Source: Octopus sinensis (lineage: Eukaryota). Taken from it: 64,000 nucleotides of DNA. The stretch is from contig NC_043001.1 in the NCBI RefSeq assembly GCF_006345805.1, positions 84,444,001 through 84,508,000 on the forward strand, given 5' to 3'. Below, piece by piece: positions 3,495 to 35,840 of this stretch. Below the pieces are notes generated by a model. It did no database searches. It saw only the letters and a list, made by a program, of their open reading frames with translations, and had not been told where the DNA came from. How positions within the stretch are numbered: position 1 is the first letter of the stretch; each line of letters starts with the position of its first letter. The translations under genes were made by a program, and so were the position numbers.

Positions 3495-3654
3495 CGTTTT
3501 CTCGCACTGATCCTGTAAGATCGGCCTCGGCCTTGTCGATATGTGGTTCTGTATGTAACCCCGGATGACGCCGGTAGTAGTTCGATCGAGGATAAGCATG
3601 GTTTGATCGCGCATGTGAACTCCTTGAATTCCCCATCCTACTTTGTAAAAACCT
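3495..3654 (-). CDS. Candidate alternative N-terminal coding exon A (ATG at 3636: MGNSRSSHARSNHAYPRSNYYRRHPGLHTEPHIDKAEADLTGSVREN)
   Basis: Acceptor ctttccatcag|AG, donor G|GTAACA (phase 1), ATG context AGGATGG. Paralogous to 14390-14555 with 12/22 identical residues in the RSS..SNYY..HPG block, four of them via synonymous third-position changes. Confidence 0.7.
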
Positions 3655-4344
3655 CTGATGGAAAGTGAGTAAGCAGAATGCTGCGATGTGAATTTGTCAG
3701 AGTAAGTGTGTGTGTGTGTGTTTGTATATATAAGTATGGTTTGAAAGAATGTCACTTACTCTATCTGTGCGTATGTGTGTTGAGAAATGATGCTGGTATT
3801 GGCGAACAGGTATGTCTCTGTTATGCTGTAAAAGACTATGCGTGCACAACCGCACGCACACGCAGGCGCGGGTGTGATGTATGTTTGTGTGACCGTATGC
3901 GTGTGTATGTGAATGTGTATGTATGTATGTGTGTGTGTGTGTGTGTGTGTGTGTGTGTATGAATGTGCTTTGAATGTGTGTATGTGTCTATTGTATATTA
4001 TTCTATAATAGTGATGGCTGGTCGCATAGGTTCCTCTCAGAGTGCGTGCCTACGTGCGTATTTACTTGCCGCTGTCAGTGTTGGTATTCATGTATATAGT
4101 ATCACAGTATGCATGTGCATGAGTGCGTATGTGTGTGCGCGCACGTATGGATGTGTGTGCGCGCATATGTTTGTGTGTGTGTGTGTGTGTATGTGTGTGT
4201 TGGTGTCAGCATGTTAAGTTTGCAAGTTTCTGTTTTTGAGTTGTTCATGATGCTCGTGATGTTGTTAATACTGTATATATAATTATATAAACATAATATT
4301 ATATATAATTATACATACATGATATATAATTTCATTGTCGTTAC

Positions 4345-4550
4345 TGTTATTGTAGTTGCTATGCAGCTATTGTTGTTTTTGTTGTTGTTGTTGGGTGGAT
4401 TTCAATTACTTTTTACAGACACACACACAGAGTGAAGTAGAAAGAGAGAGAGAGAGGGTGAGAGAGACATGTGGTGCAATAAAATTTGGCATCAAACGGA
4501 TTTCATCTCCTGCCGTACACATCGCAGAACGTGAAGGAATTTAAAGTGCT
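4345..4550 (-). promoter_or_regulatory. Conserved upstream block / putative non-coding first exon of cassette A
   Basis: Homologous to 14888-15085 (GCAATAAAATTTGGCATCAAACGGAT vs GCAATGAATCTTGGCACCAATCGGAT; TGCAGCT(GTT)n). A donor-like GTAA at 4344 aligns with the one at 14887. Confidence 0.45.
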
Positions 4551-5276
4551 TACTAATATATGTATAAACGCAAACACATATATGCATAATTACACACATA
4601 TGCACATATACAGATAGGTACATATACAGATAGGTATATATATATATCATATATATATTATATATAATATATATAGTATATATATATATATATGTACACA
4701 CACATGCACAAATACACACACACATGCATACATGTATATGTGTATATATACAGATGCACCGATATATATATATATACATACACAGACAAAACATATTCAG
4801 AATGTGTGTGTATAAATCTGCATACAGGTGCGTGTGAGAAAGAAAGAGTGAAAGAGGAATCACTGACAGACAGACAGTCAGTCAGTCATACAGAGACAGA
4901 AAAAATGGTTTATTATGTTAATATAAACTCATGTGCCTATATCAATATATATATAATATATAATATATATAATATATATATATATATATATATATATATA
5001 TATATATATATATATATTATAATATATAATATATGATATACAGCACGGATTTTTGTCAGTGAACAGGTCGCGGATTTTAGCGACGAAAATATTTTGACAA
5101 ATTAAACTTAAATGTGAAGTGAATCGAACGGCTTTTGTGTGTTCTTAAATGGATTATAAACACCTCCACGCTGCAATTGTTTTCGTTTCAGCACACGATC
5201 TCAGATCAAATTACTTGCTATGCGAGTACATCTCCGTAATATATATATATATAATATATATATATATATATATATA

Positions 5277-6245
5277 CAGGTATACCTCATCATACGTCGT
5301 TAATTGGTTCCAGGAGACACGACTTAAATCGAGAAACGACGTAACGATAATAAGCATTCTTAGTTCTGTACTTAATTTTCAATAATACATTGTTAATAAA
5401 AACCTATTTTAAGCTTACAAACAAATGATTTTTCATATTTTAATACAGTACAGTAAAAAAAAAAAGTAATCTAAATTTACGGATACAATTTGGCGGTATT
5501 TTACCGTACATCACGGACGCTTTATTTATAAATGCAGTTTGCAAGAAGACATGATAAAATAAAAGCCTTTTTTAAGCTTAAAAAACAAATTCAGTAATTA
5601 TTATTATTTTACAATAGTAAAAAAAAAAACTAAATTATAAAAAATTTACCAATGCGTACATACAATTTGGTGGCTTACATTGCGGATGTAGATGACTGTG
5701 GATCGTCAACATCAACAGCTGACTCTGGCTGTTCTTGTTGTACGATGCGCTTAAAAAATCGGCTGAGAGTTCCTTGAACTGCCTTCTTTTCCTCAAGGAT
5801 TACACTATTAGGAGCAAAAGCTTCGTGACAAGCCACCATATCCTAGAACCTAAAAAAAACTTTTTCGATACATGCAAATGCTTCCTGGCTCAGGTTCAAC
5901 TTCCTCCTCTTTATTTTGCTGCTCGTGAAGCTCCATCAAATCCTCGTTCGTCAGGAGCTGCTTGTCTTTTTCCAATAAATCTGTGAAATCCTCCTCCTCC
6001 AATTCCATTTCCAGTTCTTTGCTCGTAGTCACCAACGTTTTGATGATGGCAACACTTTCAAATCCCTTAAAATCATTCACGAATTGCTTACATAGCTTCT
6101 TCCATACACCATTAATAGGTGTGCTCTATACATCATTCTGTGCCGCTGCTATGTTCTGTATACCTTGTAGATATCTTATCTCTTCCAAAAGTCACGAAGT
6201 GTGATGGACTCTTTAAGATCAGTTGCAGCTATTGCTTGCCACAGC
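5277..6245 (-). mobile_element. Tigger/pogo DNA transposon, 3' part (pseudogenised transposase C-terminus)
   Basis: TA-CAGGTATACCTC terminus at 5277. Minus-strand QAIAATD..LRDFWK..NGVWKKLCKQFVNDFKGF..ELEMELEEEDFTDLL is typical of Tigger-type transposases. Confidence 0.85.
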
Positions 6246-33860: not shown

Positions 33861-33944
33861 ATTGATGGTGACTTCGAAGTTTCGGCCCGCTAGGCATCTG
33901 CGGACGTTGGCTTAGTGGGCTGAAACTTCGAAGTCACAGCCAAT
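33861..33944. repeat. Short fold-back containing HHR 3' halves
   Basis: GTGACTTCGAAGTTTCGGCCCGCTAG / TTAGTGGGCTGAAACTTCGAAGTCAC. Confidence 0.75.
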
Positions 33945-35061
33945 GACCTTCTTGCTTTAAAATTATATTTGTGTGTGTAAATGTGTGTGTATATATATAT
34001 ATATATACCTTGTGTACGTGTACAGAAAACAGAAAAAAAGACAGAGAGACATTGGAAAGATCAAATAAAGACTATCCATCTAGATTATCAGAACAAAGAA
34101 CCAAACCAACACACATACAAACATACATACATATACGCAGAGACACATATATTCACTTGCAAATTTCGATGCCAAGGGATACGCAAGTTAATGATACTAG
34201 CTTGTTTGGGAAACTGACATTCTCACTAACTACAAAATGTCAAACGAAGGAATTATATCAAGATTTTTGTACGAAGATTATTCCTCGAAGTGTGTCAAGT
34301 TGTATGAGTGGAGCGTTGAAAGAAACAAAGGTACTAGGCTTGGATTACATGTACTTTGAAAACGTTAGCGAATAGACGCGTCTTGAAGAGGAGAAGGGAA
34401 ATGACGGCGATTCTATTTGCAGGCAGTTTTATTGCGATACATTGTTGTTTGTAGCAAAAGTGTTTGCTATTAGATCATCAGGTTTCATAGCTAGAGGTAA
34501 GTGATATAACAGACTGCTATATATAATTTCTTTAAAGAACAATGAACTTAAATCACTCGTTCATAATTCTTTACCCCGCTTGAGTTCATCTATCATATAC
34601 GTATGTATGTAGGTTTTATGCATGTATGTATGCATGTTTTTTATGTATGTATGTATGTATGTATATATGCATGAATGAATATATGTGTGTATGTACGTAT
34701 AAGTGCATGTGTGCATGTACTTGAGAACGAATATATGAATCTATGTATAGATGTATACGTATGTATGTATGTGTGTATATATATATCTATGTATATTTGT
34801 ATGCATGCATGCAGGTATGTATGGATGTATGAATGTATGCATCAATGTAAGACTATATGCATGCATGTATATATGTATGTATGTCCTGGGTAGGACTTGA
34901 AACTATATCCGGTATGGGAGTTCTAGAGTTTGAGGAGCGGGGAACCATCTCTTTGCCATGATTGTCCTCAGGTCAACTCTGAACCGAGGTAGTAGCACCT
35001 GCTAGGTCCCAGTATCCCCACCCCTCCCCCACATATATATATATGTTTGTATATGTATATG

Positions 35062-35433
35062 CAGGAGTGGCTGTGTGGTAAGTAGCTTGTCTACCAACCA
35101 CACGGTTGCGGGTTCAGTCCCACTGCGTGGCATCTTGGGCAAGTGTCTTCTGCTATAGCCCCGGGCCGACCAATGCCTTGTGAGTGGATTTGGTAGACGG
35201 AAACTGAAAGAAGCCTGTCGTATATATGTATATATATGTATATGTGTGTGTGTTTGTGTGTCTGTGTTTGTCCCCCTAGCATTGCTTGACAACCGATGCT
35301 GGTGTGTTTACGTCCCCGTCACTTAGCGGTTCGGCAAAAAAGGACCGATAGAATAAGTACTAAAGGTGGTGCTCCAGCATGGCCGCAGTCAAATGACTGA
35401 AACAAGTAAAAATAGTAAAAAGAGTAAAAAGAG
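35062..35433 (+). mobile_element. Family-2 SINE, full-length reference copy with internal (TA)n(TG)n
   Basis: CAGGAGTGGCTGTGTGGTAAGTAGCTTG..GGTTCAGTCCCACTGCGTGGCATCTTGGGCAAGTGTC..AAATGACTGAAACAAGTAAAA-(AGTAAAA)n tail. Confidence 0.93.
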
Positions 35434-35803
35434 TATATATATATATATATATATATATATATATATATATATATATATATATATATAATATATATATATA
35501 TATATATATATTTACACACGCACACCACACACACACAAAAACACAAACACACACACACACACACACACACACACACACACCACACACAGAGGAGAGTGAT
35601 AGAGATAGAGAGAGAGATATAGAGAAGATATATATAAAATTGTTATTTGCACCGCGTACAGATCTGGATTAACCATTTGTATATTTATTCTTAAAATCTT
35701 TTGGTAGCTTCATACACGTAATATGGTGATTACTACAGTGTACATCATAGGATATAACTATCTCTCTTTTACGGCGGTAGTGTGTTCATCACACGTGACT
35801 CAC

Positions 35804-35840
35804 TGGCACAGAGGATTCTAAAATGTTTGTGTCTCGCCAT
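35804..35840 (-). CDS. Candidate short N-terminal coding exon D (MARHKHFRILCA + phase 1)
   Basis: ATG context CAATATGGCG, consensus donor A|GTGAGT, open frame back to an acacag acceptor. No homology support. Confidence 0.35.

Follow-up and report, generated by a model that had tools for sequence, protein, structure and literature searches.

Duplicated, probably alternative 5′ coding exons in a 64-kb stretch of the Octopus sinensis genome

In clusters of multiple variable first exons, such as UGT1, GCNT2 (IGNT) and the clustered protocadherins, every variable exon possesses a promoter of its own, and splicing joins each one separately to common constant exons (Zhang, Haws & Wu 2004; PMC1885805). 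A comparable design was proposed, in a preliminary description made from the sequence alone, for a 64,000-nucleotide stretch of the Octopus sinensis genome (RefSeq assembly GCF_006345805.1, contig NC_043001.1, positions 84,444,001 to 84,508,000; hereafter the window), in which four exons were taken to provide mutually exclusive N-termini. Since the window is octopus nuclear genome, reasoning from splice signals is appropriate. We name the four exons, all on the minus strand, by the coordinate of their last base (E35804, E21788, E14390 and E3495); the letters given to them earlier are ambiguous, in that the acidic tails and the claim of an own ATG do not match the order in which the exons were listed. 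Our analysis establishes that E14390 and E3495 are paralogues. The pair probably represents real but ordinary duplicated alternative 5′ coding exons, and the four-exon array is not established. As in the UGT1, GCNT2 and protocadherin clusters, E14390 and E3495 are paralogous, lie in tandem in one orientation, and each carry an ATG and a donor of the same phase; local exon duplication as the origin is a further likeness, and joining to shared exons is presumed here. Unlike in those clusters, only two related copies, and no large array, are present in the window, and in contrast to UGT1 and the protocadherins an acceptor-like site lies before each ATG and the promoters and constant exons are putative. 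Furthermore, the octopus exons are ~150 nt long and would encode a short, probably disordered N-terminus, whereas a UGT1 or protocadherin variable exon encodes a whole domain and spans about 0.85–2.4 kb.

Two other kinds of system invite comparison. Mutually exclusive exons are reportedly born by tandem exon duplication (Kondrashov & Koonin 2001; Letunic, Copley & Bork 2002), and E14390 and E3495 are like such exons in being homologous, in agreeing in phase at either end (0 at the 5′ end, 1 at the 3′ end) and being similarly long (166 and 160 nt) when a conserved CAG/AG serves as acceptor (slashes mark exon boundaries here), and in that inclusion of both breaks the frame. They differ from internal mutually exclusive exons in carrying the start codon and thus defining N-termini, and from duplicated ones in lying 10.9 kb apart with transposons between them and in that no docking or selector complementarity was found. 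The other comparison is with neuronal genes in which alternative N-terminal exons switch lipid anchoring or targeting, for example KChIP, CaBP1, Cavβ2, PKA-C and PDE4. It serves as a lead only: as in KChIP-type genes, the distance covered by the short alternative N-terminal exons runs to tens of kb, one of them has a myristoylation-type MGxxxS start and one does not, and there may be a longer isoform through an upstream internal exon, E21788. In contrast, no sequence similarity to any of these families was found in protein and Pfam searches, and the constant part by which a family could be recognized lies outside the window.

The relationship between E14390 and E3495 is evident at both the peptide and the nucleotide level. 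Their peptides align with a Smith–Waterman score of 69, which none of 5000 shuffles reached (shuffled scores 24.3±4.9), and a gapless alignment of 24 residues pairs NERSSLTTSNVSSPVSNYYNSHPG of E14390 with NSRSSHARSNHAYPRSNYYRRHPG of E3495. Within the window, tblastn recovers the pair at E=2e-5, and nhmmer aligns positions 14707-14373 with 3814-3478 (E 2.7e-10 to 8.6e-10), i.e. roughly 340 nt in the same orientation. The duplicated unit as a whole measures ~0.4 kb and runs from ~170 nt upstream of the ATG through at least 60 nt of intron (Table 1). A third copy of this unit was not found by nhmmer anywhere in the 64-kb window. A supposed degenerate copy upstream of E21788 (GNLRSQLSFSN ... SRNYYDDP, ~22530-22400) was rejected, with shuffle p values of 0.21-0.26. 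Searches elsewhere gave no further copy either. A metagenome scan with the motif TCGAACTACTAN6CATCCGGG returned four matches of GC (guanine plus cytosine) content 0.49-0.72, which we read as chance matches in non-octopus contigs, with ~3-4 expected by our estimate. As to whether it belongs to a dispersed repeat family, the unit has no copy in the 82 kb examined of an ENA assembly with which the window has only a long interspersed nuclear element (LINE; 73% identity) in common, nor in a 20-kb O. vulgaris locus carrying the window's short interspersed nuclear elements (SINEs); both are small samples and weak controls.

Several features indicate constraint on the reading frame given in the preliminary description. 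In an ungapped block of 72 nt, this frame yields 14/24 identical residues (BLOSUM score 69), against 9/23 (30) and 10/23 (33) in the other two frames, and permutation of the alignment columns reaches the observed amino-acid identity in only 0.36% of trials (p=0.0036). Of the perfectly conserved nucleotide blocks AGGAGTTC, TCAAA, TCGAACTACTA and CATCCGGG, every one terminates at a synonymous difference in a third codon position (TCT/TCA, AAT/AAC, TAT/TAC and GGA/GGG). The two ATGs align with each other and both stand in an RNNATGG Kozak context (AAAATGG in E14390), and the exons differ in length by 12 nt, a multiple of three, whereas the first indel past the donor is of 1 nt. In a neutral simulation limited to substitutions, at 30-45% divergence, an ATG, an open frame and a GT donor were retained together in 0.3-2% of trials. 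When a strict first-exon filter was applied to the minus strand (strong Kozak context, at least 25 codons, non-repetitive, GC content of at least 0.42, donor score of at least 4.5), only E14390, E3495 and three transposon open reading frames passed. E14390 and E3495 thus appear to be, or to have long been, coding in this frame. E3495, which had been put forward as a weakly supported exon, is among the two best supported of the four, since it is a paralogue of E14390 and has kept the coding features.

Table 1. Positions of the candidate exons, the duplicated unit and its motifs, and transposon remnants in the window
Feature	Position	Strand	Description
E14390	14390..14543	-	ATG-bearing 5′ coding exon (candidate), MENENERSSLTTSNVSSPVSNYYNSHPGRRNYVSRTVLFFEGLDEGSDEVE + G; 51 codons + G; ATG at 14543
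E3495	3495..3636	-	ATG-bearing 5′ coding exon (candidate), MGNSRSSHARSNHAYPRSNYYRRHPGLHTEPHIDKAEADLTGSVREN + G; 47 codons + G; ATG at 3636
E21788	21788..22020	-	exon-like internal segment, 233 nt, 5′ phase 2, 3′ phase 1
E35804	35804..35840	-	12-codon ATG open reading frame, MARHKHFRILCA + A; ATG at 35840; donor CCA/GTGAGT
Duplicated unit, copy 1	14330..14712	-	~170 nt 5′ flank + E14390 + at least 60 nt of intron
Duplicated unit, copy 2	3435..3816	-	flank motifs + E3495 + conserved post-donor block
Copy 1 motifs	14696-14691; 14616-14611; 14559-14554	-	GCCAAT; TTTATA; pyrimidine tract + TCAGAG
Copy 2 motifs	3803-3798; 3732-3727; 3658-3653	-	GCCAAT; TATATA; pyrimidine tract + TCAGAG
Conserved post-donor block, copy 1	14390-14374	-	GGTAATGTCACAATGAA
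Conserved post-donor block, copy 2	3495-3479	-	GGTAACATCACGATGAA
Pogo/Tigger-like DNA-binding piece	7413-7532	-	CENP-B_N match, E=2e-4
Acidic C-terminal piece of pogo/Tigger-like remnant	5853-6125	-	
LINE reverse-transcriptase tail	6289-7334	-	73% identical to ENA-assembly copies, 84% to O. vulgaris copy

We favor, with a probability of about one half, the explanation that E14390 and E3495 are long-ago tandem duplicates that have been kept as working coding exons and provide alternative N-termini of one gene. An old tandem duplication would have copied a unit of ~0.4 kb, made up of 5′ flank, an ATG exon of ~50 codons and the start of the intron, and each copy would supply an alternative N-terminus of ~50 residues. 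The donors of both are in phase 1 (AGG/GTAATG in E14390 and ACG/GTAACA in E3495, i.e. G/GTAAY) and would be spliced to the same phase-1 acceptor exon, located to the left of the window; because G is the first base of this split codon in each, the residue at the junction would be identical in the two isoforms. Use of the two exons would be mutually exclusive, either as first exons with promoters of their own or as alternative second exons, and in the latter case joining both yields a stop within six codons. Upstream of both exons, in corresponding places, a GCCAAT motif and a TATA-like element have been conserved. The TATA-like element lies ~80 nt (E14390) or ~70 nt (E3495) downstream of GCCAAT and 70-95 nt upstream of the ATG, an arrangement which fits the presence of an own promoter. 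Both copies also have a conserved pyrimidine tract and CAG/AG 13-19 nt before the ATG, as well as a TTCAC branch-point-like motif ~40 nt upstream, which would fit an internal exon with 5′ phase 0 starting at 14555 (166 nt) in the case of E14390 and at 3654 (160 nt) in that of E3495. Since this conserved acceptor-like site precedes the ATG, the two may, instead of being genuine first exons with promoters of their own, be alternative exons in an internal position that bear the ATG. Neither 166 nor 160 is a multiple of three, and joint inclusion therefore breaks the frame.

The two predicted N-termini share the pattern RSS..SN..P.SNYY..HPG and differ at residue 2. The N-myristoylation consensus is G-{EDRKHPFYW}-x(2)-[STAGCN]-{P} (PROSITE PS00008); judged by eye, the start of E3495, MGNSRSS, fits it and that of E14390, MENENE, does not. 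Since only MG-NSRS fits the consensus, the two isoforms would then probably be unlike in their anchoring to membranes. The 17-nt block that begins with the last exon base (GGTAAYRTCACRATGAA; element GTAAYRTCACRATGAA) is the best-conserved stretch of the duplicated unit and is otherwise absent from the window. It may be an intronic splicing element; a docking site complementary to it was looked for and none was found.

Of the other two candidates, E21788 is exon-like. Its GC content is 0.515, compared with 0.31-0.35 in the flanks, its ratio of observed to expected CpG is 1.31, and GC content steps sharply from 0.24 to 0.52 at the acceptor. The acceptor is a T-rich tttcag/A with 22020 as first exon base; an alternative at 21968 (first base 21967, exon of 180 nt) is weaker. 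The donor, AAG/GTAAGT, is perfect and scores 11.8 on a generic metazoan matrix whose frequencies are approximate, compared with 8.0 for E35804, 4.95 for E14390 and 4.9 for E3495. The support for E21788 is tempered by the fact that 11/25 strong minus-strand donors are likewise preceded by at least 50 open codons. Its peptide is Ser/Arg-rich and ends in ...RFTSLERLYERLGRRKSVDESTDEEDE + G (at greater length, ...SHSRESHSRFGRRDCFSLVSRRRRRGRRGGRVRFTSLERLYERLGRRKSVDESTDEEDE + G). Because it has an acceptor and lacks an ATG, which is absent throughout its open frame of 96 codons, E21788 cannot start a protein. From its sequence features it is probably an internal exon of a longer isoform, which would start further upstream and use the same downstream exon in the same phase. 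No significant similarity of E21788 or E35804 to the E14390/E3495 pair was detected (p 0.2-0.3), and a possible homology between E21788 and the latter half of E14390 was likewise considered and is not significant. E21788 is bracketed by a direct repeat of 160 bp, the two copies of which (22101-22260 and 20495-20654) are 100% identical and lie ~80 nt upstream of the acceptor and ~1.1 kb downstream of the donor. The repeat has neither TG..CA ends nor an obvious target-site duplication; a local duplication of very recent date, a small element with terminal repeats and an assembly artefact are all conceivable origins.

As for E35804, a TATAAA (35907-35902) and a CACGTG (35895-35890) are found upstream of it; TATAAA occurs 79 times on the minus strand of the window. 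Its support is at chance level, with 18 minus-strand combinations of equal quality (at least 12 codons, donor score of at least 7, phase 1), and it is probably not a coding exon of an array. About 500 nt upstream of E35804, at 36343-36456, are three tandem copies of a ~36-bp unit (aagagaccaaaaaagtaagatggaaaagagatattt-like), adjoined by a CpG-rich stretch (36450-36700) that has no repeat match within the window.

Several observations weigh against the explanation that we favor for the pair. Both paralogues have weak donors (about 4.9), and nucleotide identity, at 41-47/80 per block, is alike in the flank, the exon and the start of the intron, so that the exon is no better conserved than its surroundings; the second halves of the two exons hardly align. 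Stop codons are absent from all three forward frames over the length of E3495 and from two of them over that of E14390. Since several frames are open at this pair, an open frame is weak evidence there. As an observation in itself, several stop-free frames over 140-150 nt are unusual in an AT-rich genome. The interpretation of the pair as first exons is made less clear by the acceptor-like site conserved ahead of each ATG. A constant exon was not found in window positions 1-3494. Three exon peptides gave no match in a word-indexed search of 5.8e9 protein clusters (E≤10) and none at E≤0.001 in an exhaustive phmmer search of 1.84e9 representatives, the searched collection including Octopus bimaculoides and O. 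vulgaris proteins; Pfam had no match to the exon peptides, nor did a full-text literature search for the peptide strings. The lack of protein matches is weak evidence, because isoforms distinguished by nothing more than their N-terminus can be masked when proteins are clustered at 90% or 50% identity. Part of this evidence is what one would cite for the view that the two copies are decaying remains of an old local duplication, as pseudo-exons or non-coding DNA, and that all four exons are chance combinations of an open reading frame and a GT in AT-rich, repeat-rich intronic or intergenic DNA: the missing homologues and Pfam matches, the weak donors, the even nucleotide identity within and outside the exon and the several frames open over both exons, to which one may add that long chance open frames are numerous, with 125 of at least 90 codons in the window. 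We nevertheless consider such decay unlikely, if the most serious of the alternatives, in view of the frame-specific conservation with its synonymous block ends (p=0.0036), of the retention in both copies of ATG, Kozak context, open frame and donor, as compared with 0.3-2% under neutrality, and of a net indel that is in frame within the exon next to a 1-nt indel just past the donor. Conservation is unusually high in the 17 nt that follow each donor, 3/4 differences there falling at third positions of the read-through frame, and this also counts against splicing at these sites. Taken with the donor scores of only about 4.9 and the hydrophobic continuation in both copies, it would agree with there being no splicing at all, E14390 and E3495 then being the beginnings of small proteins of 78 aa (14543 to 14307) and 175 aa (3636 to 3109) that share a GN[VI]TM motif and, after it, a hydrophobic stretch resembling a membrane helix. 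The third-position pattern is, however, not significant (p about 0.11). Read-through is made unlikely by the 1-nt indel after ATGAA, which puts the homologous T-rich tracts in different frames, by the origin of the hydrophobic runs from (TTG/ATT)n-type microsatellites, which are hydrophobic in any frame, and by the degeneration of the E3495 continuation into Thr/Ser/His/Tyr low-complexity sequence; moreover, the products are not on record as called genes. We rate it the least probable of the explanations considered.

If E14390 and E3495 are working exons, they could still be arranged in other ways than as alternatives within one gene. In the preliminary description all four exons, 35804, 21788, 14390 and 3495, were mutually exclusive N-termini on a common phase-1 constant exon. 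The four minus-strand donors lie at the coordinates given and all have phase 1, the sequence does encode the acidic tails ...EGSDEVE-G and ...ESTDEEDE-G, and E21788, E14390 and E3495 have in common a G as first base of the split codon. The agreement in phase is nevertheless at chance level, because the 1,396 minus-strand ATG..GT combinations (at least 12 codons, donor score of at least 0) are distributed roughly equally over the phases (487/463/446), and the likeness of the acidic tails of E14390 and E21788 is not significant (Smith–Waterman score 25, shuffle p=0.29). The proposal that exons begin in phase 0 with an ATG of their own holds to the extent that ATGs are present in E35804, E14390 and E3495, but E21788 has none, and its canonical acceptor gives phase 2. 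That the exons are incompatible in frame when chained is largely borne out: joining E35804 or E21788 to E14390 or E3495 places a TAA or TAG just ahead of the ATG of the latter, E14390 joined to E3495 reads ...DEVEEVFTK and stops after 5 codons, and all chains into E14390 or E3495 reach a stop within 1-6 codons. E35804 runs into a stop inside E21788 when the canonical acceptor is used, and is in frame with it only via the weaker acceptor at 21968. Consecutive coding use is thus impossible except from E35804 to E21788, and that exception would represent consecutive rather than exclusive use. With only 2/4 exons related, E21788 unable to start a protein and E35804 one of about 18 equal chance candidates, what stands of the variable N-terminal array is the paralogous, unchainable pair, and we regard the four-exon arrangement as distinctly unlikely. 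More doubtful again is a tandem duplication of the gene as a whole, in which E14390 and E3495 would each open the coding sequence of a different gene and be followed by downstream exons belonging to that gene alone. Their same orientation and the promoter-like flank (GCCAAT and TATA-like elements) taken in by the duplicated unit would accord with this. In the 10.6 kb between the paralogues there are, however, SINEs, microsatellites and a pogo/Tigger remnant whose two parts lie on either side of a LINE fragment, and no non-transposon exon candidate was found in this interval, although small exons could be missed and octopus introns are long. E14390 is therefore without obvious private downstream exons and, as detectable homology extends over only about 0.4 kb and the interval appears free of exons, duplication of an exon within one gene is favored over duplication of a whole gene. 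Finally, the pair could be the visible part of a larger cephalopod cluster of variable 5′ exons, with more copies outside the window, promoters of their own and GTAAYRTCACRATGAA acting as a selector for splicing one exon at a time to a constant region. We hold this to be very improbable, ahead only of read-through; if true, the variable/constant organisation of vertebrate genes would have a counterpart in an invertebrate.

If alternative use of E14390 and E3495 within one gene is confirmed, the locus would offer a clean, small case of tandem exon duplication giving two N-termini in an octopus gene, in which a single G/A change in codon 2 would toggle a myristoylation signal, so that membrane-anchored and soluble isoforms could come from one gene. 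For annotation, it would mean that current models may lack the exons, or may contain them in isoforms that clustering conceals. The pair raises no new question in this respect; both exon duplication and alternative 5′ exons are commonplace.

The window is AT-rich (GC content 0.35) and dense in microsatellites and SINEs, and Rfam and tRNA scans of it gave no matches. Islands rich in GC and CpG at 24.3-24.7 kb, 39.9-40.1 kb and 49.8-50.0 kb were considered as exons and rejected, being SINE-type repeats or simple sequence by eye. In particular, SINE-type repeat copies at 24290-24420, which by eye appears tRNA-derived, and at 39900-40080 produce local GC/CpG peaks that mimic exons or promoters. 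A nested transposon remnant seems to occupy 5600-7800 on the minus strand, where pogo/Tigger-like pieces are split by a LINE reverse-transcriptase tail (Table 1). The best named relatives of this LINE fragment are Octopus bimaculoides and Octopus vulgaris proteins, and the 20-kb O. vulgaris locus (GCA_951406725.2) and the window have 62 repeat matches in common, at roughly 70-90% identity. LINE reverse transcriptases 73% identical to the window copy also occur in the ENA assembly ERZ26859072, which is filed among metagenomes and has contigs of 0.2-0.9 Mb. These contigs have none of the window's SINEs in common with it; they seem to be animal DNA, perhaps that of another mollusc or cephalopod.

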